Part shown: positions 2 through 56,087 of the stretch, one piece after another | Layout: every line of letters starts with the position of its first letter | Position numbering within the stretch: the stretch's first letter is position 1 | Notes under the pieces: generated by a model | Seen by the model: the letters and a program-made list of their open reading frames with translations, nothing else | The model's database searches: none | What the model was told of the DNA's origin: nothing | Sequence record: NC_041878.1 | Reading direction: 5' to 3' (one strand) | DNA length: 64,000 nucleotides | Position numbers and translations under genes: made by a program

Positions 2-202
2 CATGACCATATTAAACAATCTATTTCAGGATTACATTCATTTGATTTAGAATACAAAGAACATGTTTACGATGGCAGTACTGAACCCTATACAATTAGA
101 TTAGTAAAAGGTACTGGTGAATGTATCAATCAAATGATTAAATATTATCCGTGGCTTGAAATAGAAGATGAATCTGTACAGGTCGAAGATCTACATGAAT
201 AA
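2..202 (+). CDS. Hypothetical protein, 3' part (runs off window start)
   Basis: Open frame from base 2 to TAA 200-202 (HDHIKQSISG...EDLHE); overlaps next ATG at 195. Confidence 0.6.
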   Translation, partial: HDHIKQSISGLHSFDLEYKEHVYDGSTEPYTIRLVKGTGECINQMIKYYPWLEIEDESVQVEDLHE

Positions 203-40858: not shown

Positions 40859-41530
40859 TTATTTTATCTCTGTTATTTTTAATTTAGCAAGTGAACCACC
40901 AAAATAATATGGTTGCCCACCAACTTCAGCACTAACATATGATCCACCAATAGATAGCTTATATCCAATTCCGTATGGATATAGAGGAAATGTTTGTGTA
41001 TTATTGTAATAAGAACTTTTCACCGTAATACCAGAATTCTTTATATATGTGAATGTCATAGTTTCCCACGACATATGGTTAGTTCCATTCATTAAAACTC
41101 TATTATATGTTTCCCCGCTATCTAAAAAGTACTGGAAATATGTTGATGGAAATTGGTTTAATGCACATGTGATTCCTGGAATTCTTTGTGAGCTATAATT
41201 ACCAGTTTCCCATAAACCTTCCATCACTGAAGTTCTGTTAGTTTTAAACTGTATTACTACCTCAAAACTTCTATTAGTAAGATCTAGTTTTGAACCACTT
41301 ATAATTGGTGGTGTTACATAATATCCTGCACCACTAAATTTAAAAACGTTTTGTCCTAATTGTGGATCGTATTGGACAGAGCCAGCAGTTCCAATTGTAC
41401 TAAATTGTGCTCCTGCATTATCTCTGATAAAATTGTCACCAATTGTTTGTGTACTGAAATCAATATCTAACAGTACTGTATTTGGAGGTAAAATATTTGC
41501 ATATTCTACCAATCTTGGAAATGGTAACAT
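40859..41530 (-). CDS. MLPF-family protein, lectin-like
   Basis: MLPFPRLVEYAN; paralog of 44030..44701. Confidence 0.75.
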   Translation of the reverse strand: MLPFPRLVEYANILPPNTVLLDIDFSTQTIGDNFIRDNAGAQFSTIGTAGSVQYDPQLGQNVFKFSGAGYYVTPPIISGSKLDLTNRSFEVVIQFKTNRTSVMEGLWETGNYSSQRIPGITCALNQFPSTYFQYFLDSGETYNRVLMNGTNHMSWETMTFTYIKNSGITVKSSYYNNTQTFPLYPYGIGYKLSIGGSYVSAEVGGQPYYFGGSLAKLKITEIK

Positions 41531-41538
41531 AATATCCT

Positions 41539-42396
41539 CTATTGAAATCTATATTGTGAATTTATTGGTGAAGTTGAATATCCATACATACTATATACTT
41601 TAACGCCATCTAATGATGTATATAATGCTCCGCGAGATATACCAACTGAAGTGTTAAAACCGACTTGCGACCAAGTATTAGTACTAATACTATATTTGTA
41701 CAATCTTTCAGCATTAACACAGTAGATGGCATCATTATATTCATTATAAGTCATTCTACCTTGCATTGATGCCATAGAACTCCATGTTCCAGTAGAAATT
41801 AAAAATTTCTGACCACTAGAACCTTGACAGTACAAATAATTTCCATCAGTTGTCATATCACCAGCCAACGAATTAGTAATACTAGAACTTGTTAGTGTAG
41901 TCCATGCATTAGATGCAATGTCATATGAAAATAATTGTGAACCGCCGTCACTACCCCATAGATATAGCTTTCCATTATTTGTACTTACAAACCTACAATG
42001 GTGTCTAGCTGATGGCTTATTAGTACTCGTTGTATTTTCAGACCAAGTATTAGATGATATATCGTATATAAAAAATCTGTTTTGCATGGAACCAGTATAT
42101 CCACCAAACATATATATTTTTCCATTATATCCAGCTAAACCTGAACCATGCATTGCTAATGTTCCATTAGCTAATGGTTCCCATGTTTCAGTACGAGTGT
42201 CAAATCTCCAAAATTCATTATTATAATCACTGCCAACTACTGCACCACCATACATATAACCATAGTTATCTAAACTAGTATATCCAAAAGAAAATCGTGC
42301 ACTAGGGGAAATAGTAGGTGAAATTTGGATTCTTGTTCCGGTATTATTTTCTTTTCTGATATTTCCATATTCTATCAATCTTGGGAATGGTAACAT
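41539..42396 (-). CDS. MLPF-family protein, Kelch beta-propeller
   Basis: MLPFPRLIEYGN; YMYGG...WRFD...TWE and IYMFGG...YDI...TWS Kelch repeats. Confidence 0.8.
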   Translation of the reverse strand: MLPFPRLIEYGNIRKENNTGTRIQISPTISPSARFSFGYTSLDNYGYMYGGAVVGSDYNNEFWRFDTRTETWEPLANGTLAMHGSGLAGYNGKIYMFGGYTGSMQNRFFIYDISSNTWSENTTSTNKPSARHHCRFVSTNNGKLYLWGSDGGSQLFSYDIASNAWTTLTSSSITNSLAGDMTTDGNYLYCQGSSGQKFLISTGTWSSMASMQGRMTYNEYNDAIYCVNAERLYKYSISTNTWSQVGFNTSVGISRGALYTSLDGVKVYSMYGYSTSPINSQYRFQ

Positions 42397-43100
42397 TATA
42401 CTTCTCCGCTTAATTCATGTGTATATATTTTTGCAATTGTCGCATTATCTAATAGATAATCATACATCCTGTGTCCAGCAATTCCCCCAGCTAACGGTGT
42501 AGCGGTTGGGTTACTTGGATAGTACCCTAAACCAACACTACGTGCTGTTGTTGTACCAGTACCGTAACCAGTAAATGTAGGACTTACTGACTGAGTTTTT
42601 ATCAATACTCCATCAGCATAAAAACGTAAAGTATTAGTACTCCTATCATAAGAATATACAGCATGTACCCATGTATTAACAGGCATTGAGTACTGACCAA
42701 AATAAGAATTAGTAGTACTCGCAGTATTCACACAATAAAAATTCCGTACTAACGATGGAGAACCACCAGTATTGTAACTGAACCCAATATTACCAGATGC
42801 ATTTATGTATGCCTTTGCAGCAGTACTAGTAGTGTATACCCAATTCATTGCAGTCCATGATGAATTTGCATAAACTATTTCATCATAGTATAATCTCTGT
42901 GCTCCATTACATACAAGAGCTTGTTTACCACCAACTGTACCTATTGTACCAGATGTATAAGTGAAGTTCGCTTGTGTAAATTTAGGATTTGTGGTATCAC
43001 CATGATTAGCAATATCAGCACGTAAGGGTAAGTACACCAATGGTGCTGGAAGAATATTTGCAGCATTTCCATATTCTAACATTCTTGAAAAAGGTAACAT
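42396..43100 (-). CDS. MLPF-family protein, LamG-like
   Basis: MLPFSRMLEYGN; WVHAVYSYD...RFYADG...RMYDYLL. Confidence 0.8.
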   Translation of the reverse strand: MLPFSRMLEYGNAANILPAPLVYLPLRADIANHGDTTNPKFTQANFTYTSGTIGTVGGKQALVCNGAQRLYYDEIVYANSSWTAMNWVYTTSTAAKAYINASGNIGFSYNTGGSPSLVRNFYCVNTASTTNSYFGQYSMPVNTWVHAVYSYDRSTNTLRFYADGVLIKTQSVSPTFTGYGTGTTTARSVGLGYYPSNPTATPLAGGIAGHRMYDYLLDNATIAKIYTHELSGEV

Positions 43101-43109
43101 AATATCTCC

Positions 43110-43952
43110 CTATTTGATTTTGTAAAATTTAGTTCCGTTTACTGTCCAACCTGTATCATATGAACATGCTATAGCAACTTCATTTCCACCAGCAGGAGCA
43201 GTATTGTTAATTTTTGTCCATACATTAGTGTTTATACTGTACTGCCATAAACCCGCCGTTGGCCCAACTGCATAAATGTAATTACCCATTCTACTTATTT
43301 TATTACGTGTTCCAATTCCTGCACATGATGCAAGGGTTTGCCATGTATTACTTTCTATATGATAACGTGCAAATGAAGTACTGTACATCATATACAAATA
43401 ACCAGAACTATAAATTAAACCTACCTCATCACCATTACTGCTACCAAAAGGTAAAGTTGCTAAACCTGTGGTACTCCATGTATTTTGTAACACACTATAT
43501 CTCCACATAGCTGAACCTTTAACTGCATAAACATAATCACTATTATCATAGTTCATCGCAATACTTAAATCATACGTGCTTTGTGGTAGTACTGCCATCT
43601 GACTCCAAGTATTCAAGATTGTATCATATCTGTCAAATCTGTTCGTACTACTATATCCACCAGCACAATAGATATATCTGCTATCAGCACATATTCCAAT
43701 GTTTCTAACATTTATTGGTCTTGTTGTAAGTAAGGTGACTGCACCTGAAACTGGATTCAGTTTATATATTTGGCTTGTCTGGTTAATGAAATATATATTG
43801 TCTCTGTATGTACAAGATCTTGACCCATATGTTCCAAAGGTTGAAACGGTGGTATATTCTTGTACTGTTCCTGATAATTTATTTGGGTTTGAATCATCAT
43901 AATTAAACACTACTGTATTTCCGTACTCATTGATTATAGAAAAAGGTAACAT
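43110..43952 (-). CDS. MLPF-family protein, Kelch beta-propeller
   Basis: MLPFSIINEYGN; IYCAGG...RYD...NTWS repeats; TAAATA at 43982-87 (minus). Confidence 0.8.
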   Translation of the reverse strand: MLPFSIINEYGNTVVFNYDDSNPNKLSGTVQEYTTVSTFGTYGSRSCTYRDNIYFINQTSQIYKLNPVSGAVTLLTTRPINVRNIGICADSRYIYCAGGYSSTNRFDRYDTILNTWSQMAVLPQSTYDLSIAMNYDNSDYVYAVKGSAMWRYSVLQNTWSTTGLATLPFGSSNGDEVGLIYSSGYLYMMYSTSFARYHIESNTWQTLASCAGIGTRNKISRMGNYIYAVGPTAGLWQYSINTNVWTKINNTAPAGGNEVAIACSYDTGWTVNGTKFYKIK

Positions 43953-44029
43953 TTCAATCCCTCAAATTTATTAATATTATGTATTTACTTACAAAAACAG
44001 AAAAAGCCCAACCTAAGTTGAGCTTATAA

Positions 44030-44701
44030 TTAACTTATAATCTTTAATTTTAAATACTTCATGTACCCATAAAAATTAGTTGCCGTAGGAGTTTTGAAAT
44101 AACCACCTACACCAAAAGACTGTCCATTAGAACATTCAAATGCAGTATACGTGGACTGATTGGCAATAACACCATTTACATATCTGGTAATAGTTACATT
44201 TGAATCAACTTTTCTGTACACAACTCTTTGCCAATCACTTACTAACTGACCATCAACAAAATGTCGAACAAATGTACTAGCGTTCTGTAGAAAGTACTGA
44301 TCATTTCCTGCGTACTGTAATATCTGATGAGCAAATCCAGGTATGTTATTCGTTACATCTGGATAATATCCTGTACCATAAAGTAATTGAATTGCGTTAA
44401 CCGCAGAGTTTCTTTTGTACATAACATCGAACTCATAATTCTTCCCGTTCAATGAGATAGATGCATCTAGCGGGGTACTGAAAACTGCACCATTGAAATA
44501 CATAACATTTGCATTCAACATATTATCCAGTACGATTTTACCCTCCAAAGAATTTAACTTAGTGAAAAGTCTATTCTTATAACTATAATCAATTATATTA
44601 GTATCACCCAATGCTTGTCGAGAAAAATCTAAATTTATTTCATACTCATTGGAAACTACTTTTTTATTACCGTACTGTAATAATCTTGGAAATGGTAACA
44701 T
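44030..44701 (-). CDS. MLPF-family protein, lectin-like
   Basis: MLPFPRLLQYGN; FYGYMKYLKL C-terminus. Confidence 0.75.
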   Translation of the reverse strand: MLPFPRLLQYGNKKVVSNEYEINLDFSRQALGDTNIIDYSYKNRLFTKLNSLEGKIVLDNMLNANVMYFNGAVFSTPLDASISLNGKNYEFDVMYKRNSAVNAIQLLYGTGYYPDVTNNIPGFAHQILQYAGNDQYFLQNASTFVRHFVDGQLVSDWQRVVYRKVDSNVTITRYVNGVIANQSTYTAFECSNGQSFGVGGYFKTPTATNFYGYMKYLKLKIIS

Positions 44702-45464
44702 ATAAATTCCCCTCTATATCTTTTAATATCCTGTATTTACCATTGTTATAACTATATAAATATCTACTATCCGCACATAACATAGAATTGTTTAATTCAG
44801 ATGTTCCTAATGATGCAGTACTCCATGTGTCACTTAACATATCATATATGTACAGATTACTATTACCTATACCATATAACTTGTAATTGTTATACGCCGT
44901 GCCAGTACTATAACTCAACTTCAACGGAGGAAATGTAAGTTCTTCCCAGGTCCACGTACTTATATCTATCCGATACATACCATTGTATAAATCAGCAGCC
45001 CATATGTAAAAGTAATTAGTCTCACCAATATTAACAAAATATATCATCGCTTGTGATAATTTTCCTGGAGAATTCGTAGTAACAATAACATCCCATGTGT
45101 CAGATTCAATACTATATCTATACAACTTATCACTTACCTGTGTGCCATTACTATCCTTTACACCACCGTACAAGTATATGTGAGAATTATAATACGTACT
45201 CGTTGTACCATATAAAACTTCAGGCATAGATGATAATTGATGCATGGTATTATCTATAGTACTGTACCTGTACAAATTATTAGTTACCTGTGTACCATTC
45301 CATCCACCACATATGTATATGTCTGACTGTACTGAACATACCATATGACCATATAATTGTGTGCCACCTAGTGTAATTCCTTGCGGTTCTACAACTTCCA
45401 TATCTCCATCAATAATACCAGGTGCTGAATTTCCATAAGCACTTACTATACTAAACGGTAACAT
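44667..45464 (-). CDS. MLPF-family protein, Kelch beta-propeller
   Basis: MLPFSIVSAYGN; IYICGG and IYLYGG Kelch repeats; 35-nt overlap with the next gene. Confidence 0.75.
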   Translation of the reverse strand: MLPFSIVSAYGNSAPGIIDGDMEVVEPQGITLGGTQLYGHMVCSVQSDIYICGGWNGTQVTNNLYRYSTIDNTMHQLSSMPEVLYGTTSTYYNSHIYLYGGVKDSNGTQVSDKLYRYSIESDTWDVIVTTNSPGKLSQAMIYFVNIGETNYFYIWAADLYNGMYRIDISTWTWEELTFPPLKLSYSTGTAYNNYKLYGIGNSNLYIYDMLSDTWSTASLGTSELNNSMLCADSRYLYSYNNGKYRILKDIEGNLYVTISKIITVR

Positions 45465-45474
45465 TTTAAATCTC

Positions 45475-45563
45475 CTATTGATTATTTGTTAATGTATTAG
45501 GGAATGAACGATCATCTCCATAAATTATTCTTACAGCACCACCAATTGCGGAAAAGGTAACAT
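45475..45563 (-). pseudogene. Collapsed MLPF-family gene (N-terminus joined out of frame to a GAVRIIYG C-terminus)
   Basis: AAGGAG RBS, MLPFPQLVVL*; shifted frame reads AIGGAVRIIYGDDRSFPNTLTNNQ*; TAAATA at 45627-32 (minus). Confidence 0.65.
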
Positions 45564-46216
45564 ACTTTTATCTCCTTCTTATTTTTTTATACGTCTCTAT
45601 TATACTATGATAGAAACTAATATAGGTATTTACCCACTTTATCATTCCTAGACACTCCTTAGAACACATGCTATAATCCCCCTAGAAGCTCGTAGAACGC
45701 TCTACAACGCACGTGTTTGATTCCTGTAGTATCGCTATTGCGATATCGAAAGGATTCAAACTAGCTAAAATAGCGTTCACGATATTCTATGTATTAATAT
45801 ACAGTACTGTAATAATACACAATATGGATAAGTTATCAGTACTATATGTTTGTACAGGAAAAGATAGGTTCTATCTTATAGTACTATAGAAGTACAGTTC
45901 AGTACTGTTGACCCCTTCCGCTATATCCGTTCCTGAAGTCGAATGCGAATAGCACAAAAAGTACAGCAACCTTTTTTCAAAAATGATAACATGAGGTTGG
46001 GAAAAATCTGGAGTGATCGTGAAATCAAATACGAATCAAGGAAATTTTGGAGTACCCTTCAGACTTTTTCTGAGATCTCGAAAGTACACCAAAGTAAAGA
46101 CGCATCGTAGAAATTACGTTCAATACTATAATACAAATACAAAGTACTGAAAATTTATACAGTACTGTTATTATGCACAGTGCAATATAAATTTTAAAAT
46201 CAGATGAAAAAAGTAC

Positions 46217-46370
46217 TTGACGAGGGATGATGGAATTGATACTATAGCTACAAGTTAAGGAGACAGGCAACGGTCAAGCCTCTCAGCCACGTAGCCTGGA
46301 ACCTTAACAGTACTGCAATGATGGTTGCCCCCTGATTTGCAGTCCTCTTACCAGAGGTGTTCTCTTCATT
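46217..46370 (+). ncRNA. Promoter-fed structured small RNA candidate
   Basis: TTGACG-N17-TACTAT (46217-45); GTTAAGG/CCTTAAC, AGGC/GCCT, ACTGCAA/TTGCAGT, CCTCT/AGAGG. Confidence 0.45.
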
Positions 46371-46599
46371 GCTTAGGAAACATTAAGTACTAAGCGTGTT
46401 AAAAATTTGAAGTACTTTATAGTACTATGCAGTGTACATTCTACTAAGTCATCCTGCCAATAACTTTTGAATGTATAGTGCTAGTACTATATCTTTTTAA
46501 GTGAGAATATTAGTACTGTATAAGTACTGATGAATTACCAAAGTACAGATACAATGAGGGTATATGTTGTCTGAATTTTGGGTGTACTATCCCTATCTG

Positions 46600-46730
46600 C
46601 TATCTTCAGATGGATAGACTTCTGGCGGTGTAGATGGCTGGATGTTTAAACGTCTAGACTGCTATCCTTCTGGATGGCTAAAAGGCTAGATGGCTATCCG
46701 TATAGATGGATAGACGTTTAGACGGCTAAA
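46600..46730. repeat. Iteron-like short direct repeats (TAGATGGCTA / AGATGGATAGAC)
   Basis: At least 6 imperfect copies of T(A/G)GA(T/C)GG(C/A)T in about 130 bp. Confidence 0.6.
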
Positions 46731-46912
46731 TGATTTTTTCTGTCAAAATTCCATTAGCTCCCCTTCCGCGACTGGATAGAACCAGGCAGAATCGAAAGTC
46801 GTCTTTTCGTGTTGACAGGGATATAATACCACACTGAAAAACAATTGCAAGGGATTTTTTGCAGAAAAATAAATTTGACAAGTGAACCAGGATTATAGTA
46901 CTATATAAGCAA

Positions 46913-46946
46913 GCCAGAGAAATGGCCTAGCCCACAGGGTGCGGAG
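46913..46946 (+). repeat. Two-hairpin element copy 1
   Basis: GCC-AGAGAAAT-GGC + GCCCACAGGGTGCGGAG; TTGACA at 46875. Confidence 0.85.
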
Positions 46947-46984
46947 ATCCGTCTATTGCTTTTTATTTGAATTTTGGACACAAT

Positions 46985-47017
46985 TCCGCACCCTGTGGGT
47001 CAAGGAGTTTCGCCTCC
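46985..47017 (-). repeat. Two-hairpin element copy 2 (convergent with copy 1)
   Basis: GGAG-GCGAAA-CTCC + ACCCACAGGGTGCGGA; minus-strand TTGCAT-N17-CATAAT upstream. Confidence 0.85.
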
Positions 47018-47088
47018 ATGTAAAGTATTATGCCAGTACTGCGAACATAATGCAAGGACTTTTTACGATTTTCTTTAAAAAAGTTTCC

Positions 47089-47222
47089 CCTTCTATATAC
47101 GTATAAAGGAAGCGTTTAGAGCGTGTCAGATCCTGGGGCTTACAGTTTTGTACTTTATACTTTATAAAGCCGTGTAAAGCGTCCTATGCGTTCCTTGTAC
47201 GTGTATACGTATATAGAGAAGG
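47089..47222. repeat. Long imperfect inverted repeat
   Basis: CCTTCTATATACGTATA-AAGGAAGCG ... CGTTCCTT...TATACGTATATAGAGAAGG. Confidence 0.65.
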
Positions 47223-47266
47223 AAAAGCCTGTTAGAAAGAATCTTATAAAAACTTATATAAAGTAC

Positions 47267-47661
47267 TTGCAAAGGTTTTTTGGTGTGATAGTATTAATCC
47301 CGTCGAACAGGACAACGCTCTTTAAAAACTTGCTGGTGAATACTTAAACATGCCTCCAGGTACTTTGAAAAAAGAATCTGAGAGAATGAAAAAGTACTTG
47401 ACAGCAAGAATAGAAAGTGTAGAATGTTCAATATCGAAAGGCGGTAAGGTTCGCCGGATGGTAGGAAGCGGTAGCAGGGCGATAAAGTACTGCTACAGTG
47501 ATAAGCCGGAAGTGCTATCACAGCGTTATAAAGGTTAACATAACTGTTAACGTCCTATCTACTGCCTTTTGATTCTTTCAGTACGGTAAAAGGTACGAAA
47601 GAATAAAGATTCAGAAAGTTATCAAAAAGTACTTGACGGACTGAATCGCACGATGTAAGAT
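47267..47661 (+). promoter_or_regulatory. Three tandem early promoters with boxA
   Basis: TTGCAA..TAGTAT (47267-94), CGCTCTTTAAAA boxA-like (47316-27), TTGACA..TAGAAT (47398-425), TTGACG-N17-TAAGAT (47633-61). Confidence 0.75.
47437..47569 (+). ncRNA. Multibranch structured RNA / leader
   Basis: AAAGGCGGTA/TACTGCCTTT closing stem; inner GTAGCAG/CTGCTAC, GTGATA/TATCAC, GTTAAC/GTTAAC. Confidence 0.5.
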
Positions 47662-47722
47662 GTTAAGTAAGCCGAGTGGCTAACCCAAAATTCAAAATTT
47701 AACTTTTAAGAAGGTATATATC

Positions 47723-48400
47723 ATGACTACTACTAACAACGCTAAAGCTACCAAAGTTACCCTGAACTCTATCGTTTTCGCTCCGGCTCCGGTACTGCGT
47801 GAACTGAAAGAAGGTGAAAACTACACCAAAACCGAACTGAAAGCCCACGAAAAAGAAATGGGCGAATATCTCCGCACCACGTCGCACGATTTGGCGATGT
47901 ACCTGGTAAACAAAACCGACAATACTGATACCATTGTCAAACTGTTTGCCGCTACCGCCGAAGCGATCCCTACAGTACTGGCCGAAGTACTGAAACAGCG
48001 TGAAGAAGAAGAAGCCGCTAAACAGGCTGAACGCGAAAAAGCGGAAGAAGAAAAACGTCGCCTCGCTGAACAGGAAGAAAAAGAACTGCAAGCGAAGAAA
48101 GATGAAATGCTTAAACACATGACCGATGTTCTGGGGCTGGATCTGGATGTTGCGAAAGCTGCGGTTGAAACGGTGGCGAAAAAGCTGAACGTTGGCAACC
48201 ATACTAAAAACTCTTATGAGCGTGTAACCTGCACCATTGAAGGCAATCAGTACGATGTTCCGGTGCGTGGTAATATGTCTCAGGCACTGAAAGATCTGGC
48301 GGCGAAATATGGTTTCGCTGATGACCGCGATGGATTCATCGAAAAATTCCGCGATGAACCTGCAACTGCTGATGCTGACAAAGATACCGCCGAAGCGTAA
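47723..48400 (+). CDS. Abundant early protein, possibly H-NS/MvaT-like
   Basis: AAGGT RBS; strong host-optimal codons; E/K/A coiled coil ending LGLD; small C-terminal domain (YDVPVRGN...GFI). Confidence 0.8.
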   Translation: MTTTNNAKATKVTLNSIVFAPAPVLRELKEGENYTKTELKAHEKEMGEYLRTTSHDLAMYLVNKTDNTDTIVKLFAATAEAIPTVLAEVLKQREEEEAAKQAEREKAEEEKRRLAEQEEKELQAKKDEMLKHMTDVLGLDLDVAKAAVETVAKKLNVGNHTKNSYERVTCTIEGNQYDVPVRGNMSQALKDLAAKYGFADDRDGFIEKFRDEPATADADKDTAEA

Positions 48401-48549
48401 TATCAAAAGTAATGCGGCAAGGGGGCTAGAAAGCCCCCTGAGCCTTTCTAACAGTACTGTAATACCTTTCCTCAAAGTACTATTAGAAACGCTTAGAATC
48501 AATCCTACAGCGTTTTAAGATGTATACTTATTAAGTGAGAATAAACGCT

Positions 48550-48819
48550 ATGGAACTAAAACCACTTTCTGAACTCCGCGATAAAAAAACCATTGTCGCC
48601 AGGACAATGATCCACACTTCCCCACGTCAAAAGGTTTTATCTGGCTATCTGGTTTTTGTGCTGGATGGTAAACTAATACAACGTCGGATCTATGATATGG
48701 CCTATAATAGTACTTTTATGAGTGCTATGTATATAGTTTACAAAGGCGTTAACTATGCCGTAGATCTTGCATGTAAGACGATTAGCGGGGCTTTCAGCGT
48801 CGAAACGTTGAAAGTATAA
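48550..48819 (+). CDS. Hypothetical protein
   Basis: TAAGTGAG RBS, ATG 48550. Confidence 0.65.
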   Translation: MELKPLSELRDKKTIVARTMIHTSPRQKVLSGYLVFVLDGKLIQRRIYDMAYNSTFMSAMYIVYKGVNYAVDLACKTISGAFSVETLKV

Positions 48820-48954
48820 GCCTACAATCAAAAGCCCTTAGAAACGTTTCTAGGGGCTTTATATTTGATTTTAAAAAGTACTAAGAAAGTACTTGCAATT
48901 TATTTTTGAATCTGTAGAATACTCGTTATTGAAACACGTAACGAGATTTAAGAA

Positions 48955-49239
48955 ATGCAAGTAACACTGAACGGATTTACTTTTACAAAGAATGTTGATG
49001 GTACTGATAACATTCAGTCAGTACTTAAAAACAAAGATAATAAAGCATTAGGCGGGATTGTCAAAGATGCTAAGAAGATGGCAAACTTACAACGCCTGAA
49101 ACGTTCGCCTGATGTTCTGGTATTCCTGGCTAAAGTACAGGAAGAAACTGAAAAAGTTTACTTTGAACAAAAGAAACCAAAACCTTACAATAAGTACAAA
49201 AGGAAATTTAATCCTTGCATTCATTCTATAAATGTGTAG
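48955..49239 (+). CDS. Basic hypothetical protein
   Basis: Own promoter; 94 aa. Confidence 0.65.
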   Translation: MQVTLNGFTFTKNVDGTDNIQSVLKNKDNKALGGIVKDAKKMANLQRLKRSPDVLVFLAKVQEETEKVYFEQKKPKPYNKYKRKFNPCIHSINV

Positions 49240-49274
49240 AATGTCTTATATCGAAACGCGACGGAGTAAACAAG

Positions 49275-49664
49275 ATGGAAAGTAAAGCGAAGTTAGAACA
49301 ATACAGATTAGTACTTGATGTACTGATTCAAATGAAAGATTGTATTGACAAAGATGATACTTATACTACAGTACTGAATAAGTCATTCAATCTTTCTCGC
49401 TCCCTGGGTATCTGCTGGCATGTATATGTTCACACTCCACCAGCGGAGATCACTGGTATCGGATCGGACTATCTTGAACCTGCATTCATTGCGTTAGGGC
49501 TTGATCGTGAATATCCGGTTGAATGCCAGGTTGATACTGATTCGCCGCGAATCCTGCACTTTACACAACGTAACCTTTACGATCCTGATAACGAGTGCGG
49601 AAAGTTGCGGATCAAGTTGGTTAATGATTTGATTCAGTACTTTGAACAAAAGTTATCGCAGTAA
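49275..49664 (+). CDS. Hypothetical protein
   Basis: GGAG RBS, ATG 49275. Confidence 0.7.
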   Translation: MESKAKLEQYRLVLDVLIQMKDCIDKDDTYTTVLNKSFNLSRSLGICWHVYVHTPPAEITGIGSDYLEPAFIALGLDREYPVECQVDTDSPRILHFTQRNLYDPDNECGKLRIKLVNDLIQYFEQKLSQ

Positions 49665-49722
49665 AAATCTTTACAAAAAAGAGGTTGACTTCGGTTGGCC
49701 TCTTATAGTACTATATTAATAA

Positions 49723-49756
49723 GCCAGAACAAAGGCGTGACCCACAGGGTGCGGAG
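49723..49756 (+). repeat. Two-hairpin element copy 3
   Basis: GCC-AGAACAAA-GGC + ACCCACAGGGTGCGGAG; TTGACT at 49685. Confidence 0.85.
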
Positions 49757-49793
49757 ATCCGTTCAGTGAAAAGATAATGAATTTTAGATATAA

Positions 49794-49827
49794 CTCCGCA
49801 CCCTGTGGGTTAAGGAATTTCGCTTCC
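49794..49827 (-). repeat. Two-hairpin element copy 4 (convergent with copy 3)
   Basis: GGAA-GCGAAA-TTCC + ACCCACAGGGTGCGGAG; minus-strand TTGACA-N17-TATATT. Confidence 0.85.
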
Positions 49828-50087
49828 ATGAATAATAATATACCACTGCTGGAAAGTACTGTCAAGGAAAAAAACAGGGGAACTTTCATGTTCCCCCTAA
49901 ATGCGACAAAGGCATATATCGGACTTTGTGCGAGCTTCGTTGATCGCATGAGTACTATATCACAACGGCCAGGCGAGTGCAACTATTTGATCTGTGATAA
50001 AAATATACTTTCAAACGTGAAAAGTACTTGCAAAGAATGATTAAAGGAGTATACTTAACTTATCGAAACGAACAAGAGGATTTAAAA

Positions 50088-50360
50088 ATGGCTAGTTACA
50101 GTGCGTCAATGATTGTTAAGGATTTAGCAGGAAAGCCGTGTTTAGCTTGCGGTTCCTTTGGTAACATTGCGATAGATGGTAGATTATCTATTTCCAGGGC
50201 GATAGAGATAGCGGAGGAAAGTTTTAAGAAAGAATCCAAATTTCAAAACAGCGAATACTTGGGATTTGTAATTGAGAAAACTTCTCGATTCGTTGAATAT
50301 CGTAATCCGAGTATTATCGGTAATAAAGAAGTAAAAACTTTTAAAGAACTTGAACGATAA
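50088..50360 (+). CDS. Hypothetical early protein
   Basis: GAGGA RBS, own promoter. Confidence 0.7.
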   Translation: MASYSASMIVKDLAGKPCLACGSFGNIAIDGRLSISRAIEIAEESFKKESKFQNSEYLGFVIEKTSRFVEYRNPSIIGNKEVKTFKELER

Positions 50361-50423
50361 TACTTGCAAAGTGGGTAATGGTTTAGTACTATTACCCTAT
50401 CGAAACGAACTGAGGATTTAAAG

Positions 50424-50870
50424 ATGGGAACTCCAGCATGTATCGCAGTAATGAACGACAATAAAGAAGTTACTTGGACTTATGTTAACTATGACGGTTA
50501 TTTAAACGGCGTAGGTAGAATGTTGATCGAGCATTACAACGATCTGTCAATAGCTAAAAAATTAATTTCAATGGGTGATATTTCAACATTGAAGCGAACG
50601 ATGGATTGCCCCGTTGGTCACTCATTCGCTACACCTGCACCAAATTGCACAGTATTCTATGAGCGGGATCGTGGTGAAGATAATGTAAAACCACGTCACG
50701 GCGATTATGCTATGTTCCTGCGTTGTAATAAAGGTACAATTAGTTATATCTACACGGATGGACAATGGCACATAGTACGGGAAACAAGTAAACGCGGTGC
50801 AATTTTAGACCGTCATAAATTGTTAGTACTTGGCGAAGTGTTATCCGGTTTATATGATTTTTCGCGTTAA
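50424..50870 (+). CDS. Conserved phage hypothetical protein
   Basis: MGT...Y..YDGY..GVG..L..HY...LI..GDIS motif recalled from many phages. Confidence 0.75.
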   Translation: MGTPACIAVMNDNKEVTWTYVNYDGYLNGVGRMLIEHYNDLSIAKKLISMGDISTLKRTMDCPVGHSFATPAPNCTVFYERDRGEDNVKPRHGDYAMFLRCNKGTISYIYTDGQWHIVRETSKRGAILDRHKLLVLGEVLSGLYDFSR

Positions 50871-50946
50871 TTAAATTGTATATAGTACTTGCAAAATTCT
50901 GCGAGTACTATATAATTACTTATATCTTAAACGGGAGAACAAAGAA

Positions 50947-51402
50947 ATGAAAGCTATCGAATTTGAACAGAAAGTAAGAGAATCCTTTTTGAAGTACTTC
51001 CCGAACGGGCATATTCGTTTATCTAAACTTGCTTTAGGTGGCGGCTTACATATTGCTTGCGGCCTGATTGCAAACGTTAAAGAGATCACCGCAACGATCA
51101 GACAAAACGACCCGTTAAACGTTTCTATCTTTATTCATGATAACTATGTATTCAATGATTCAGAAACGGATCTTGATAATGTAGTACTTGAATTTGATAA
51201 TTCTCATGTATCGGTTATTCCTGATAATCCGCACATGTACAGCCAATCGCACAAGATCGCAGCACGTAAAATTAACGCTGCACCAGAAAAAGCACTGGTA
51301 AACCTGGATAAGTATTTTAAACGTGTTAAAGATGTTGTCACAGAGCAAGCGGCATTAAACCGGATTATCAAACAAGATACAATCGATCCTAAGTATCTGT
51401 AA
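50947..51402 (+). CDS. Hypothetical early protein
   Basis: GGGAG RBS, own promoter. Confidence 0.7.
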   Translation: MKAIEFEQKVRESFLKYFPNGHIRLSKLALGGGLHIACGLIANVKEITATIRQNDPLNVSIFIHDNYVFNDSETDLDNVVLEFDNSHVSVIPDNPHMYSQSHKIAARKINAAPEKALVNLDKYFKRVKDVVTEQAALNRIIKQDTIDPKYL

Positions 51403-51482
51403 AATTATTATCAAAAGTACTTGCAAAATGAATGCGAGTACTTTATAATAAAGTTACATTATTAATCAAGAGGAAGTAACAA

Positions 51483-51608
51483 ATGGTCACTATCGAAAAA
51501 GTAAAAGAAATGCTGGAAGAACTCCGCGATCAGGGTTTTGTTGTTGCTGATACTGATGACGAATTAGAAGCAGCGGCAGAAATAGCATTGACCGTTTTAA
51601 ATAGCTAA
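51483..51608 (+). CDS. Small acidic early protein (41 aa)
   Basis: GAGGA RBS, own promoter; read by eye. Confidence 0.6.
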   Translation: MVTIEKVKEMLEELRDQGFVVADTDDELEAAAEIALTVLNS

Positions 51609-51680
51609 TTAAAAATAGTACTTGCATTAATTTGTGAGTACTATATAATTACTTATATCGAAACAGCGGAGTAACTTGCA

Positions 51681-51908
51681 ATGATTGAATTTCGCAGAAC
51701 TATGGAAATGTCTATCACTATCACTGACCCACGTTATACTGAGAAAGAGATCGCGGAAGGGTTATCTGACGGCTCAATGAATATGGGCGAAGAAGATGGC
51801 GAAGATGCAGGAAAGATTTTTAATAGTGCATGGGATGAAATCGCTACTATTGATGATCTTCATGTATCGGATGTTATGACGCCGGATGTTCAATTTTCAG
51901 TGATTTAA
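51681..51908 (+). CDS. Small acidic early protein
   Basis: GGAG RBS, own promoter. Confidence 0.65.
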   Translation: MIEFRRTMEMSITITDPRYTEKEIAEGLSDGSMNMGEEDGEDAGKIFNSAWDEIATIDDLHVSDVMTPDVQFSVI

Positions 51909-51981
51909 TTATCAAAAGTACTTTGACAATTTTGTTAGAGTACTTTATAATTAACTTACATTAAGCGAGAGGATTTTAAAA

Positions 51982-52404
51982 ATGTTACAAGTCAGAGGTT
52001 ATGCGGAAGGTGGTTTCTGTTTCATGTTGGATGATAAAGCGGTATCAGTACATGAAGCATTATTAGCGAATGGGGGTAAGTTTCATAAGAGAACCATTAA
52101 CGCTCTTAATCGTAATAACCTGGCGAACGAACAAGATCTGGCAGAGTTTGAAAAGCTGGTAAAGGTTTTACATACTGGCTTAGATGCCTTTAATGCTCGT
52201 AAAGTACTGCGTGATCATTTCAATATTGATGTATTGAAGATTGAGAACTATTATATTTTAACTAGTTCTGAAATTTATGATCTCATGAAAGTATATGAGA
52301 TCTGTAAGTACAAAGTAAGTGTAAAAAGTCCTGCACACTCAACGATGTACTATTTCTTTGAGTACTTAAACCGGAAAGATGTTCGCCGCCTGGAAAGAAC
52401 ATAA
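51982..52404 (+). CDS. Hypothetical early protein
   Basis: GAGGA RBS, own promoter. Confidence 0.7.
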   Translation: MLQVRGYAEGGFCFMLDDKAVSVHEALLANGGKFHKRTINALNRNNLANEQDLAEFEKLVKVLHTGLDAFNARKVLRDHFNIDVLKIENYYILTSSEIYDLMKVYEICKYKVSVKSPAHSTMYYFFEYLNRKDVRRLERT

Positions 52405-52455
52405 TTCAAGAAAGGGGTTGACTTCGGTTAGCCCCTTCTGTATACTGTATTCATT

Positions 52456-52489
52456 GGCAGATAAAGCCGCAAGCCCATAGGGTGCGGAG
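52456..52489 (+). repeat. Two-hairpin element copy 5
   Basis: GGC-AGATAAA-GCC + GCCCATAGGGTGCGGAG; TTGACT-N17-TATACT (52418-46). Confidence 0.85.
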
Positions 52490-52585
52490 GTATGTCTGTA
52501 AGAATATAAATTTGAATAAAGTACTTGCAATCTATTTTAAAAGGCGTATACTTATCTATATCGAAACAACACAGAGGAAAACGAA

Positions 52586-52921
52586 ATGGAACAGACTACC
52601 CTGGTAAATGAAGATGCAATCATTGATTGTCTCCTGAATGTAATCCTTAACGCTGGCTATTGTGTAAGCGTGAATGATGGGGAATGTACTGTTATTAATC
52701 GCAGTACTGACAAAGAAGAGATTATGTCTGAGCTTCGCGGTACAGACAGCGATTGGATCAGAATTTATAAACCTGGTGAAGCCTACCATGTTGGATCTGT
52801 TGAACTGATTTACAACAATGGATCGGACGGATTAGATCTTATCAGTAATACAGCGGCAAGTGATTTAGAAGCCCTGGATGAATTACTTATTCCAGTATAT
52901 GAATTGATTGATACGCTGTAA
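52586..52921 (+). CDS. Conserved phage hypothetical protein
   Basis: GAGGA RBS; LIYNNG...LISN motif. Confidence 0.7.
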   Translation: MEQTTLVNEDAIIDCLLNVILNAGYCVSVNDGECTVINRSTDKEEIMSELRGTDSDWIRIYKPGEAYHVGSVELIYNNGSDGLDLISNTAASDLEALDELLIPVYELIDTL

Positions 52922-52990
52922 ACATTATCAAAAGTACTTGCAATTAGAAAGCGAGTACTTTATAATGATTATATTAAATCAGGAGGATAT

Positions 52991-53158
52991 ATGGACGAAC
53001 TTTTAAAACTCTGGCAACAATTCAGTACTGTATCAGTTAACGATGATGATGAAATTGAAGAATCATTTTTGCACTTTGAAAAGGGAACAGACAGATTAGA
53101 AGTGTGGAAATGGTTTGAGAATCAGAATCCTGATTTTAAAGTATCTGATTTAGTTTAA
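52991..53158 (+). CDS. Small conserved phage protein (55 aa)
   Basis: AGGAGG RBS; LW..F....NDDDEIEE.FLHF..GT.R.EVW.WF. Confidence 0.65.
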   Translation: MDELLKLWQQFSTVSVNDDDEIEESFLHFEKGTDRLEVWKWFENQNPDFKVSDLV

Positions 53159-53241
53159 TGTAAACATTATCAAAAGTACTTTACTTATTTTGTAGAGTAC
53201 TTTATAATGATTATAGTTAATTAAGAGAGAGGGTTTAAGAA

Positions 53242-53421
53242 ATGAAATTATATGCTTATGCGTCTAATAGTGGTGAAGCTATTGCAGTTGGTAGATCTGA
53301 GCGTGGTGCTAAATCTACTGCTACTAAAAACAAAAGTACTGAAATAGGTTATATCAGTACTATTAACAATATGTACATTCCTACTCATAAAAAAATTAAT
53401 AATAAGTGGGTATCAATTTAA
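53242..53421 (+). CDS. Small early protein (59 aa)
   Basis: GAGG RBS, own promoter; read by eye. Confidence 0.6.
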   Translation: MKLYAYASNSGEAIAVGRSERGAKSTATKNKSTEIGYISTINNMYIPTHKKINNKWVSI

Positions 53422-53493
53422 TGTATATAAGTACTTGCAAGTTATTTGTGAGTACTATATAATGATTGTACTTTAAGTGAGAGGAAAGAAAAC

Positions 53494-53865
53494 ATGAATC
53501 CAGTATATGAAATCCAGGCAGATATTTTCAACACGTTCTCTGAGATCGTTACACGTGGTCATGATGAGGAATCATACAAAAGAGAACAGGCCAGAATCCA
53601 GAATGATATTAACCGCCTTAAATTAGTGCGGGATCGTTATGCCTGTAATACTCTTATGACTAGCATGTTTTGCAATGTCATGTTGCGTAAAATGTGCCTG
53701 GCTTATCGTTATGAGGGTATTCTTTATTGTACGGCTAATAATGTCCCTGGCCGTCCAAATACTGACTACTTACATACATTAAACTTAACATCGGATCAAT
53801 GGGATAGTTTAAAACAATTCCATGTATGGATCAGTACTGGCGATGTATACGCTCCAGTGCCTTAA
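53494..53865 (+). CDS. Hypothetical early protein
   Basis: GAGGA RBS, own promoter. Confidence 0.7.
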   Translation: MNPVYEIQADIFNTFSEIVTRGHDEESYKREQARIQNDINRLKLVRDRYACNTLMTSMFCNVMLRKMCLAYRYEGILYCTANNVPGRPNTDYLHTLNLTSDQWDSLKQFHVWISTGDVYAPVP

Positions 53866-53911
53866 TTAACTATAGGGGAACATTGTTCCCCTTTTTAAGT
53901 GAGATCCGCCT

Positions 53912-54166
53912 ATGAATATTTTTTATCAAACTAACAGGTTATGCGTTGCATTTGATTGTGATTCTGATAAAATACAATGCGTAATCTACCGGAAAGGAAC
54001 GGCGGTATATGATAACTGGAAAGTACTACAATCATATACAATGCGGCGTAAAGGTTTTAAACGCCTGGATAATCGAACACAGAAAGCGGCCTTGCGACAA
54101 ATGATCAAAGCAATGCGGAACCGTCAAACAATGGCTTTAAACATTGCACTTAACAGTAAGGAATGA
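53912..54166 (+). CDS. Basic hypothetical protein
   Basis: 84 aa. Confidence 0.6.
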   Translation: MNIFYQTNRLCVAFDCDSDKIQCVIYRKGTAVYDNWKVLQSYTMRRKGFKRLDNRTQKAALRQMIKAMRNRQTMALNIALNSKE

Positions 54167-54170
54167 TACA

Positions 54171-54329
54171 ATGATTCATGATGTGGTTATTACTCTGACA
54201 GTACAATCTGATAATGAAGTACTGACTAACGACGAAATTATAAAGGCGATGGAAGAAAAACTATCCCTGATGAAAGCCGAACCGCAAATGGTTAAAGAGC
54301 TTGCGGAATCCGCAGAAGTGTTTGATTAA
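54171..54329 (+). CDS. Small hypothetical protein
   Basis: AAGGA RBS, ATG 54171. Confidence 0.55.
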   Translation: MIHDVVITLTVQSDNEVLTNDEIIKAMEEKLSLMKAEPQMVKELAESAEVFD

Positions 54330-54391
54330 TTAAAAAAGGGGTTGACATATGTTAGCCCCTTCTGTATACTGTATTCATTGAAATAAATTAG

Positions 54392-54407
54392 CCCACAGGG
54401 TGCGGAG
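54392..54407 (+). repeat. Two-hairpin element copy 6 (first hairpin absent)
   Basis: CCCACAGGGTGCGGAG; TTGACA-N17-TATACT (54342-70). Confidence 0.8.
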
Positions 54408-54618
54408 ATGTATCTATTAAAAAAGTACTGTATACTTAACCAGTACCTATCAAATATAAATTCAAACGAAAAAAGTACTTGCAATGGATGATAAAAGGAG
54501 TATAATTGTTTACATGGAAGGGCAAGAGGTGAAAGGTAATGAGTCGCAGTACTGAAATAGTTCTGTTTATCTTTGTACTAGTAGCACTATCTATTAATTT
54601 TAATTGAGAGGATTCAAA

Positions 54619-54852
54619 ATGTCTTTATATGATGTAACTGTAAACAGTACTGGTATTGGTCGTTCTGGTACTACTAAGATGCTGGCTGTTGCTTTCTTTC
54701 CTCATATGAATGAAGCAAGACAAGGTATCAATGAGTGGGTATCAGAGAACTTTGTTGCTCCGGTAACTGTGAGTGTTGAATTAAAATCTCACTCAAATAT
54801 TATCTATCCATCAGAAGTCCAGGGATATGAGCGTATTGTAATTATTGAATAA
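54619..54852 (+). CDS. Hypothetical early protein
   Basis: GAGGA RBS, ATG 54619. Confidence 0.65.
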   Translation: MSLYDVTVNSTGIGRSGTTKMLAVAFFPHMNEARQGINEWVSENFVAPVTVSVELKSHSNIIYPSEVQGYERIVIIE

Positions 54853-54923
54853 TTCATTAAAAGTACTTTGACAAAATGGTTAGAGTACTTTATAATGTAG
54901 TTATTGAGTGGGGAGGAAACAAA

Positions 54924-55034
54924 ATGCAATTTGTTTTCGGTGCAATTAGTGGTGTACTGATTTATCTGAATTGGGATGTTATCAGTCCCTGGATTGAATC
55001 AGTACTGAAATTTACATTAACCTTTTTTAATTGA
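54924..55034 (+). CDS. Small membrane peptide (36 aa)
   Basis: GGAGG RBS, own promoter. Confidence 0.5.
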   Translation: MQFVFGAISGVLIYLNWDVISPWIESVLKFTLTFFN

Positions 55035-55045
55035 GAGAAACAAAA

Positions 55046-55249
55046 ATGGCACAGAAAGATCGTCGTTATGCTATCGCTGCTGAGTTCACTGGTCACGCTT
55101 CTGGTAAGAAACGTTTTGTACTGCGTTTTGAAGGTACTCGCGTATCCGATCATGGTTCCCGTTATGAAGCGGAACAGGAGATCGCGAAGTACAAGAAAGC
55201 GGGTACTATCCCTAACGTGAATGGTTCACGTTTGCTGGTGGAGGCGTAA
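55046..55249 (+). CDS. Small conserved phage protein
   Basis: EFTGH...FVLRF motif. Confidence 0.65.
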   Translation: MAQKDRRYAIAAEFTGHASGKKRFVLRFEGTRVSDHGSRYEAEQEIAKYKKAGTIPNVNGSRLLVEA

Positions 55250-55425
55250 TGCGGGAGTTTGCATTGTATGACAAGGTACACATGGAAAGGGAATATCCGT
55301 TAAGTACTAAGAAAGTACTTGATACTGTACCCGATATTTCTGATCATGAAGTTGAACGTATTATCAACATGAATGTATCAGAAAGTATTGAGATTGATAA
55401 TACTATTATCATTCGTACACTGTAA
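55249..55425 (+). CDS. Small hypothetical protein (58 aa)
   Basis: GGAGG RBS, coupled start. Confidence 0.55.
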   Translation: MREFALYDKVHMEREYPLSTKKVLDTVPDISDHEVERIINMNVSESIEIDNTIIIRTL

Positions 55426-55503
55426 AAAAACATTATCAAAAGTACTTGCTAATAGAATGCGAGTACTTTATAATGTACTTATATTAAGCGAGAGAATAAA
55501 GAA

Positions 55504-55707
55504 ATGAAAAGACTTCAAATTGACGTATCGGAACAAGCATTCAATCAATTGAAAGAATTGAAGGGTAAATGTGAAAGTGCTAGTTACGCAGATGTTACCC
55601 AAAAAGCATATAAAGTACTCGACTTCTTTATGAATGCAAAAGCTGATGGCAAATCTATAATTGTCGTAGATAAAGATGGTAAAGAAACGATAGTAGAAAT
55701 GCTTTAA
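55504..55707 (+). CDS. Ribbon-helix-helix (CopG-like) DNA-binding protein
   Basis: RLQIDV beta strand + two amphipathic helices (SYADVTQKAY). Confidence 0.6.
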   Translation: MKRLQIDVSEQAFNQLKELKGKCESASYADVTQKAYKVLDFFMNAKADGKSIIVVDKDGKETIVEML

Positions 55708-55784
55708 CTATATTATCAAAAGTACTTGCTAATAGAATGCGAGTACTTTATAATGTAGTTATTGAATCAAACAGAGATAAAGAA

Positions 55785-56087
55785 ATGAAAACTCCACATC
55801 ATAAAGCGTATGAATATCATTATTACTTTGTTGGTAAAGATGGTATTCCTTATGTAGCAAAAAACTATCTCGCTGTAGTTCCTGGCGTTAATGTTGAAAT
55901 GCTGATTAAACGCTGGAACCTTGCTGCTGGTCATGGTCGGAAGTATGTTCTTAAAGGTGAGGTGGATCTTAAAACAGCTTTATATACTCGCGGCAGTACT
56001 GGAACTATGATTGCGAATGATTGGAAGTTACTCGATCATATGCAATTCCACGGTATTGAATTTGAAGTAAAACAAATCGCAGCATAA
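55785..56087 (+). CDS. Hypothetical early protein
   Basis: ATG 55785 after own promoter. Confidence 0.7.
   Translation: MKTPHHKAYEYHYYFVGKDGIPYVAKNYLAVVPGVNVEMLIKRWNLAAGHGRKYVLKGEVDLKTALYTRGSTGTMIANDWKLLDHMQFHGIEFEVKQIAA

Follow-up and report, generated by a model that had tools for sequence, protein, structure and literature searches.

The stretch of DNA analysed here, 64,000 nucleotides of sequence record NC_041878.1 (hereafter the window), contains two loci at which a promoter and a short element on the plus strand face a promoter and a like element on the minus strand. An earlier note had described these loci as a duplicated module and had offered three readings of it: a bidirectional, transcription-primed origin, a sense/antisense RNA pair, or a hotspot of inversion or recombination. 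The question raised by these loci is whether the convergent arrangement is itself the device, or whether it is one use of a smaller part. Both arms of a module turn out to be copies of a promoter-proximal unit of about 50 nt that also occurs alone, and the pattern of change among its copies indicates that the fold of one strand has been under selection.

Positions 46000-51000 are 100% identical to Pectobacterium phage vB_PcaM_CBB (KU574722), a 378-kb Rak2-like jumbo phage. The window is the right end of CBB, and both modules lie inside its direct terminal repeat (DTR). Positions 1-22456 of the record are annotated as redundant terminal repeat (22,456 bp), and the DNA from window position 45924 onward is therefore terminal-repeat DNA (window coordinate = record coordinate + 45923). 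The repeat is backed by read depth and pulsed-field gel electrophoresis in the genome paper (PMC5259590). It carries about 50 small plus-strand genes to which no function has been assigned. Module 1 belongs to a non-coding region of 1.2 kb, situated about 1 kb from the left end of the DTR, and module 2 lies 2.8 kb further in. Together they bracket a conserved block of four to five genes (47350-49664), which have their own promoters.

Anatomy of a promoter-proximal unit

The anatomy of the unit can be read directly from its copies. When nine window copies are aligned, each on its own strand, they show a constant order of -35 element, 17-18 nt, -10 element, short leader and core. Across 106 units, the -10 element nearly always ends 3 nt before position 1 of the covariance model described below, and the pattern TTGNNN-16..18-TANNNT stands at a fixed distance upstream of 81 of them. 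A conserved CA at model positions 3-4 is the likely start of transcription, and the stem of a first hairpin begins at position 6. Hairpin 1 has a stem of 4-5 bp and an A-rich loop of 6-8 nt (e.g. GAGAAA, GCGAAA or AGAACAA). A linker of 2-5 nt joins it to hairpin 2, in which R-CCC and GGG-U enclose a loop of 3-4 nt, rarely 5 (consensus RCCC-AYA-GGGU). Hairpin 2 is followed by G, by C, G or T, by four variable bases and finally by a tail of one of two types: RTNYRTCTAT, or TCCAAAATTCA, the latter chiefly in the minus-strand members of pairs. In roughly an eighth of the units, only an A-rich leader stands in place of hairpin 1.

Several other candidate features were rejected. In single copies (e.g. 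46908-46958) the 5' end and the tail can be drawn as a closing stem, and either loop as a pseudoknot with the tail; none of these covaries across an alignment of 62 distinct units from eight phages and five viral contigs. A small conserved peptide starting in the tail finds no conserved start codon, since many tails begin with ATC, GTA or TTA. A likeness of one copy to the anticodon arm of tRNA-Cys did not hold: when the units were compared with ten phage tRNAs, none scored above shuffled controls, and the matching part is the variable region. A DnaA box and an RfaH ops element, compared by eye through their consensus sequences, match the core at no more than 7/9 and 4/7 positions, and these are positions that vary within the family.

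The unit family is apparently undescribed. At the Rfam gathering score only tRNAs pass in the window, and at E up to 5 the only further matches are far sub-threshold ones of microRNA type, on the long hairpin discussed below. A literature search with the core, in both orientations and as DNA and RNA, returned unrelated primer-type matches only. No such element is described in the CBB paper (PMC5259590), in the fEgEco12 paper or in the literature found on the four phage genera that carry it.

Selection on the fold of one strand

Hairpin 1 is the part of the unit in which sequence and structure can be told apart, as it takes more than 15 different Watson-Crick stems among the copies. In an ungapped seed alignment of 18 sequences, pairing is complete (100% of cells) and compensatory change is seen at each of the four hairpin-1 pairs; controls in which the pairing partners were slid along the same alignment gave 10-47% pairing. 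Since these sequences had been picked for the hairpin, a covariance model (R1) was built from the seed and left to find and align copies itself. In the 100 distinct sequences that it aligned, 97% of cells are paired, with 149 double-change cells, and no shuffle of this set reaches the observed values of pairing, double change or covariation. Hairpin 2 is nearly invariant, with changes from C-G to U-A at two pairs in separate lineages, including one at window position 62032.

The mismatches that occur are also one-sided. There are 43 G.U pairs for a single A.C pair, and an independent set from metagenomes has 31 G.U and no A.C. This excess, together with the pairing of hairpin 1 that is kept while its sequence changes freely, indicates that the fold of one strand is selected. 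An excess of G.U is expected for folding in the sense of the promoter's transcript, and not for a site in duplex DNA or a symmetric cruciform.

Distribution in phages, metagenomes and cellular genomes

With filters off, R1 finds exactly ten units in the window, all within 46908-63398 and so in the DTR, and the next match has an E value of 0.57. Six of the ten are solitary. The complete DTR holds 12 units, including three pairs. In seven relatives from four genera, R1 finds 9-13 units each, always in one cluster of about 20 kb. Unit-bearing relatives include Cronobacter phage GAP32, Serratia phage BF, Yersinia phage fHe-Yen9-03 and Klebsiella phage KP13-7, as well as E. coli phage UB, Erwinia phage Kaldavass, Xanthomonas phage XbC2 and several jumbo-sized viral contigs. 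The unit is conserved in all Rak2-like jumbo phages checked. In metagenomes, a specific unit pattern matches 19 stretches, in which R1 finds 48 units.

Outside these phages the unit was not found. R1 finds no unit in 555 kb of viral DNA from unrelated sources in which the 15-mer occurs by chance, and the specific pattern has no match in 185,579 cellular genomes (one per bacterial or archaeal species). In all matches listed (about 80 of at least 120), the bare 16-mer occurs in cellular genomes once per stretch, mostly in high-G+C bacteria, and these matches are evidently due to chance. It is found in no arrays among the matches listed, which was also the outcome when the core was considered as a solitary mimic of a CRISPR repeat, of the RNA anti-CRISPR kind. 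The only enterobacterial stretch with the 16-mer among the matches listed is a 12.4-kb contig (CAYQSE010000177.1; L175) of an Enterobacteriaceae metagenome-assembled genome, which is probably a fragment of a Rak2-like phage binned into that assembly.

The convergent pairs

The facing promoters and elements described in the earlier note were borne out at both loci by promoter scan and by reading (Table 1). All start sites given here are predicted from promoter spacing. In module 1 and in module 2 alike, the predicted starts are 108 bp apart on opposite strands, and the two transcripts would therefore be complementary, as the note had it, if both promoters fire. The core CCCACAGGGTGCGGA occurs once per strand between the facing promoters of both modules. 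The expected inverted repeat around about 40 nt is present as well, with arms that are 100% complementary; in module 1 they are 15 nt long and separated by 39 nt, in module 2 17 nt long and separated by 37 nt. The proposed long hairpin is the predicted fold of 130-nt RNAs from either strand, with energies of -46 to -52 kcal/mol and z-scores of -5.5 to -6.7. This hairpin is not an intrinsic terminator, because the U-tract is missing on both strands; with a loop of 37-39 nt where 3-8 nt would be expected, no T-run following it on either strand and no call by the terminator scan, a bidirectional intrinsic terminator at the modules was ruled out.

Other parts of the description need to be qualified. 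The spacer has about 70% A+T by count, in a window of 61-67% A+T, and being AT-rich is therefore not a distinguishing feature. Spacers that differ between conserved flanks are found as a matter of degree, not as a clear contrast: the flanks of promoter plus unit are 73-76% identical between modules 1 and 2, the DNA between the cores is 63% identical and the central 17 nt are 56% identical, compared with 50-53% for unrelated flanking DNA scored in the same way. Lastly, the two loci are real but the duplication is not that of a special device. The core has nine matches in the window at up to three mismatches, against 0.23 expected, and none of 100 shuffles reaches nine. In addition to the solitary copies there is a third convergent pair (module 3) just outside the window, at record positions 20840-20908 and 1.5 kb from the inner end of the DTR, in which the complementarity of core and anti-core is imperfect.

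The convergent layout is also present in relatives. Among the grounds for refutation named in the earlier note was the lack of a conserved convergent layout, and this one does not apply: syntenic modules with that layout are found in GAP32, XbC2, Kaldavass, Serratia BF, Yersinia fHe-Yen9-03 and Klebsiella KP13-7, and the three pairs are conserved in position. The core-to-core spacing is 68 nt in the three pairs of CBB, the three pairs of GAP32 and module 2 of BF and Yen9-03, and 79-86 nt in BF module 1, in KP13-7 and in three metagenomic relatives. When 12 orthologous modules are aligned, all but about 13 central nt belong to one unit or the other. The inverted repeat thus follows from the layout by itself, since two similar units in tail-to-tail orientation will be complementary over the length of their similarity; its extent ranges from 15-17 nt in CBB modules 1-2 to more than 25 nt in GAP32 module 2. 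From the conserved position of the pairs in four genera it can be concluded only that their arrangement is of importance.

Module 2 lies among other signals. The -35 element of its plus promoter sits in a terminator-like hairpin that closes the upstream gene, and the module is overlapped by an annotated minus-strand open reading frame, CBB_7 (57 amino acids, window 49716-49889). This frame spans nothing but parts of module 2, namely both units, the minus promoter and the terminator hairpin. No similar frame exists at module 1 and none is annotated at the orthologous site of GAP32. CBB_7 is probably a false gene call.

Solitary units and what lies downstream

The solitary plus-strand units of CBB lead into genes. 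The five minus-strand units of the DTR all point against every gene; three of them belong to pairs and face plus units, and the solitary one at 56141-56192 runs into a terminator at 56094-56117. This last unit occupies an intergenic gap, antiparallel to all genes, and is syntenic in GAP32, BF and Yen9-03. It is predicted to yield a stand-alone RNA of about 105 nt.

A canonical terminator follows within 140 nt downstream of only 11 of 106 units. Units that point against genes have canonical terminators within about 25 nt, for example at window 56094-56117, BF 9089-, KP13-7 32176- and in L066. KP13-7 and metagenomic relatives, too, have stand-alone units closed by strong terminators. Such terminator-closed units would give small RNAs of about 100 nt. 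That units are present with nothing behind them to be expressed is an argument for the RNA itself, or its transcription, being the point, and against a purely cis-acting antiterminator.

Upstream of several units, terminator-like hairpins with a TTCG or similar loop hold the -35 element of the next unit promoter in their stem (49676-49705, 61092-61117, 61993-62020 and 63308-63335; also upstream of 52418 and 54342). By this arrangement, the end point of an upstream transcript would coincide exactly with the start of the next unit-tagged one.

Table 1. Positions of the promoters, units and associated features in the window; start sites are predictions.
Feature	Position	Strand	Remarks
Module 1, plus promoter	46875-46904	+	Sigma-70, TTGACA-18-TACTAT; promoter scan; predicted start A at ~46911
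Module 1, plus unit	46908-46958	+	R1 67.9 bits, E 3e-18
Module 1, plus hairpin 1	46913-46926	+	GCCA / GAGAAA loop / TGGC
Module 1, plus hairpin 2	46930-46940	+	GCCC ACA GGGT; then variable GGAG
Module 1, plus tail	46947-46956	+	
Module 1, junction between 3' ends of both units	46959-46971		Least conserved part of the module
Module 1, minus unit	46972-47022	-	R1 67.9 bits; tail of TCCAAAATTCA type
Module 1, minus hairpin 1	47004-47017	-	
Module 1, cores	46931-46945 (+), 46985-46999 (-)	+ and -	CCCACAGGGTGCGGA (15-mer)
Module 1, minus promoter	47055-47027	-	TTGCAT-17-CATAAT; by reading and alignment with other unit promoters; predicted start ~47019
Module 2, plus promoter	49685-49714	+	TTGACT-18-TACTAT; promoter scan; predicted start ~49721
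Module 2, plus unit	49718-49768	+	Core 49741-49755; R1 40.9 bits, E 8e-10
Module 2, minus unit	49782-49832	-	Core 49795-49809; R1 72.5 bits, E 1e-19
Module 2, minus promoter	49865-49837	-	TTGACA-17-TATATT, TG before -10; promoter scan; predicted start ~49829
Terminator-like hairpin with T-run	49876-49897	-	Directly upstream of module 2 minus promoter
Solitary promoter and unit	52418-52501	+	Scan and R1; towards gene starting 52586
Solitary promoter and unit	54342-54419	+	Scan and R1; short-leader variant without hairpin 1
Solitary promoter (56224-56196), unit (56192-56141) and bidirectional terminator (56117-56094)	56094-56224	-	Scan and R1; predicted start ~56189
Solitary promoter and unit	61098-61181	+	Scan and R1; -35 inside terminator hairpin 61092-61117
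Solitary promoter and unit	62000-62081	+	Found by R1 only; hairpin 2 ACCT-ACA-AGGT, compensatory C-G to U-A
Solitary promoter and unit	63315-63398	+	Core search, scan and R1; diverged core

Possible functions of the units and pairs

On balance, and with ample room for doubt, the modules are probably pairs of early structured-RNA units, promoter-proximal and perhaps recognised by a protein, whose transcripts run towards each other within 108 bp. At the start of infection, the units would be transcribed from the DTR by the sigma-70 RNA polymerase of the host. Hairpin 1, with its free stem and A-rich loop, may serve as a 5'-terminal stabiliser, and hairpin 2 with the tail, both conserved in sequence, may be the recognition site for a protein partner. 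Most units would form the 5' ends of early messages, and a minority would be stand-alone small RNAs closed by terminators. In the pairs, polymerases would meet head-on and produce mutually complementary transcripts; judging from standard footprints, a polymerase would meet the complex at the opposite promoter after about 70-90 nt when both promoters are occupied. A transcript that passes through the pair would fold into the long hairpin of core and anti-core. The pair would be a source of short unit-bearing RNAs and a two-way barrier against transcription into the neighbouring DNA, and module 1, as such a barrier, would shield the non-coding genome end.

Two known kinds of RNA resemble parts of this scheme. 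As in stabilisers of the type found in the ompA 5' untranslated region, hairpin 1 lies close to the predicted 5' end (2-3 nt), and its fold is kept and not its sequence. Unlike these, about an eighth of the CBB units do without it, and a stabiliser would not need the second conserved hairpin and the tail. In PA5oct, a related jumbo phage, the terminal repeat shows high early transcription and yields two abundant non-coding RNAs (PMC7318152). These RNAs, ncRNA001 and ncRNA002, abundant from early infection, resemble the unit in their location within a long terminal repeat. They differ from it in length (236 and 451 nt) and share no likeness of sequence or structure; homology was sought and none was found, and R1 has no match in 16.5 kb of the PA5oct repeat.

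A number of points weigh against the reading of the modules as paired RNA units. The seed behind R1 was chosen for the presence of hairpin 1, and alignments made by a model lean towards the structure of that model. The RNA shares its sense with the non-template DNA strand, which could also be the species that folds. The start sites of the CBB units come from promoter spacing alone, and the end of the convergent transcripts is a conjecture, the long hairpin having no U-tract. The flanking proteins have no recognisable domain, and offer no candidate partner for hairpin 2 and the tail. Finally, four RNA libraries contain relatives of CBB, as undirected contigs, and abundant RNA at the modules is not seen in two metatranscriptomes. 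In these, the contigs of a relative stop at 46891-46905, resume at 47322-47362 and skip module 2 as well; depth is 0-2 at the modules against 73-153 over most neighbouring genes. Holes in coverage prove nothing in data of this type, in which short hairpin RNAs are poorly captured. The gaps are compatible with little long RNA crossing the modules.

A bolder alternative is that the unit RNA acts in trans, as a decoy or recruiting RNA, and thus represents a device of a new kind for host takeover or anti-defence. This is unlikely. If it were true, the promoter-driven copies, 12 in each DTR and up to 24 in an injected genome, would flood the cell within the first minutes, and the motif of hairpin plus tail would sequester or redirect a host RNA-binding protein, ribonuclease or defence sensor shared by the Enterobacterales. 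The convergent pairs would then be compact, terminator-free makers of unit RNA and of double-stranded RNA.

The sense/antisense pair of the earlier note is likewise doubtful as a mechanism of control, although its geometry is present. The two transcripts of a module would set the level or timing of the block at 47350-49664, or of adjoining DNA, in the manner of ColE1 RNA I/RNA II or of face-to-face promoters. The predicted starts, 108 bp apart, imply full overlap, the hairpin loops of each RNA are complementary to its partner, and the position of the pairs, bracketing a conserved block of four to five genes, is kept across genera. ColE1 RNA I/RNA II and coliphage 186 pR/pL have the same layout of opposite sigma-70 promoters about 110 bp apart, with overlapping, hairpin-rich, complementary transcripts and an expected collision. 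In contrast to those systems, the two CBB RNAs are copies of one unit that recurs in three pairs per repeat; both partners are the same kind of RNA, and not a regulator with its target. The unit also occurs six times in the window as a solitary copy with no antisense promoter. Complementarity would then be a by-product of the likeness of the units, and the imperfect match in module 3 and the separate promoters of the bracketed genes also speak against such control.

Quite improbable, too, is an element of processive antitermination like lambda nut or HK022 put, through which polymerase would pass the terminators of the DTR. The resemblance is one of position and form: a short, structured RNA with two covariation-supported hairpins stands right after early promoters, and the purine-rich loop of hairpin 1 (GAGAAA, GCGAAA) recalls those of boxB. 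The DTR is dense in terminator-like hairpins, with 25 found against 10.4 expected. However, canonical terminators within 25-50 nt after 11 of 106 units would be pointless if the unit suppressed termination, and five of the twelve DTR units point against every gene. No match of the tail consensus to boxA was found, no convincing small arginine-rich protein resembling N is found among 52 proteins encoded in the repeat, and Rfam gives no match. Units without sequence likeness to nut or put, some of them followed by terminators or directed against genes, do not support membership of that class.

An origin of replication is very unlikely. According to this proposal, the G-rich core of the transcript stays hybridised to its template and the 3' ends prime outward in both directions. 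The order of promoters, G-rich and then A+T-rich DNA would fit, and module 1 lies in its non-coding region close to the genome end, next to an iteron-like array at 46590-46735. The origins of T4 and T7 are promoter-dependent. T4 oriF and oriG and the primary origin of T7 combine a phage promoter with an easily melted stretch, but they are single and unidirectional, whereas the CBB units are many, convergent and under selection as RNA hairpins. There are 12 units and three pairs per repeat, modules 2 and 3 have no iterons, and the spacer has about 70% A+T within a window of 61-67%. Selection on small hairpins in the sense of the transcript is not obviously needed by a primer, and convergent transcription should overwind the DNA between promoters instead of unwinding it. 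Cumulative GC skew makes no turn at the modules, a sign that is weak in phages, where skew mostly tracks gene direction. The origin thus receives no positive support.

Least probable of all is a double-stranded DNA element (a protein site, a cruciform or a recombination hotspot) to which the promoters are incidental. The small palindrome ACCC nnn GGGT in the core, and a Fur-box-like palindrome at the centre of module 1 in other genera, which suggests that proteins sit there, are outweighed by the pairing of hairpin 1 that persists while its sequence varies, by the 43 G.U against 1 A.C, by the constant orientation and promoter distance of the unit, by a 37-39-nt centre that makes cruciform extrusion unfavourable, and by 12 orthologous modules that share one arrangement without trace of inversion. 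This single arrangement, with the 37-39-bp spacer, also contradicts the inversion or recombination hotspot of the earlier note. An invertible segment of the Hin/Gin type was rejected on the same ground, since the relatives are colinear and no recombinase domain is found in the eight proteins flanking the modules; none of these has a significant Pfam match, and the PHROGs to which they belong are of unknown function. REP and BIME elements of enterobacterial chromosomes are comparable as small, palindromic, multi-copy intergenic units, often in inverted pairs with a short linker. Unlike the CBB unit they have no promoter of their own, and the unit pattern is absent from the cellular genomes searched.

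Other features of the terminal repeat and its surroundings

In the non-coding DTR end, the iteron-like array occupies the DNA 150-280 bp leftward of module 1. It has periods of 8, 16 and 32, with a unit like GATGGCTA or TAGATGG. Distant relatives match only its right-hand end (46713 onward) and the DNA after it, and in RNA-library contigs of relatives about 46621-46905 is covered as a discrete piece. As plus-strand RNA, the array has a fold z-score of -2.65. It could be a packaging signal, a replication signal or a further non-coding RNA. To the right of module 1 there is a second large inverted repeat, also non-coding, in which 47084-47105 pairs with 47204-47225 (arms of 22 nt, 86% complementary, 98 nt between).

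The hexamer AGTACT occurs 277 times in the 64 kb, against about 22 expected (an estimate from base composition), at a density of 6.8 per kb in the DTR and 3.35 per kb before it. It is typically found against the -35 element (AGTACTTGACA or AGTACTTGCAA), just before the -10 element (CAGTACTGnnATAAT) and in small inverted repeats after units, with examples at 46483-46488, in the region of 46899-46904, at 47035-47041 and at 56094-56117. From its placement, AGTACT looks like the binding site or promoter signature of some factor.

Relatives of the Klebsiella, E. coli, Serratia and Yersinia types carry palindromes with the Fur box core AATGATAATCATT at the centre of module 1 and nearby. Sites of this kind lie in stretch L084 at 19716-19766, 20061-20085 and 21502-21526, in L003 at 2816-2840, 6984-7008, 8080-8098 and 8336-8453, and in other stretches at L057 2805-2881 and 3120, L073 6091, L081 1034 and L082 344. 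L003 has ten matches in 9 kb, against 0.2 expected. The enrichment is confined to these other relatives: a Fur box is present neither in the CBB and GAP32 modules nor, where it was considered as a candidate, in the CBB spacers. The palindromes in relatives may reflect iron-dependent control or the titration of Fur.

Upstream of the DTR, in the early region, ten tRNA genes are clustered at 642-10551 (Arg, two Pro, His, Phe, Lys, Cys, two Met and Ala). GC skew turns negative just before the DTR (40000-46000), where the open reading frames are on the minus strand (e.g. 44030-45464), and a short block of opposite gene direction thus abuts the DTR boundary.

Implications for Rak2-like phages

In Rak2-like jumbo phages the long terminal repeats, with their dozens of small genes of unassigned function, are believed to be expressed before the rest of the genome. 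To our knowledge, nothing has been reported on how these repeats are regulated. An RNA element that is supported by covariation would be the first defined regulatory part of them, and it is predicted to head about a dozen early transcripts per repeat. The hosts of the four phage genera across which the unit is conserved include Pectobacterium, Cronobacter, Serratia, Yersinia, Erwinia, Klebsiella and E. coli. The unit is a candidate new RNA family and offers a handle for 5'-end mapping, for pull-downs and for phage engineering, and its analysis corrects at least one probable false gene call. Its paired form provides a test case for head-on sigma-70 promoters 108 bp apart in a virulent phage.

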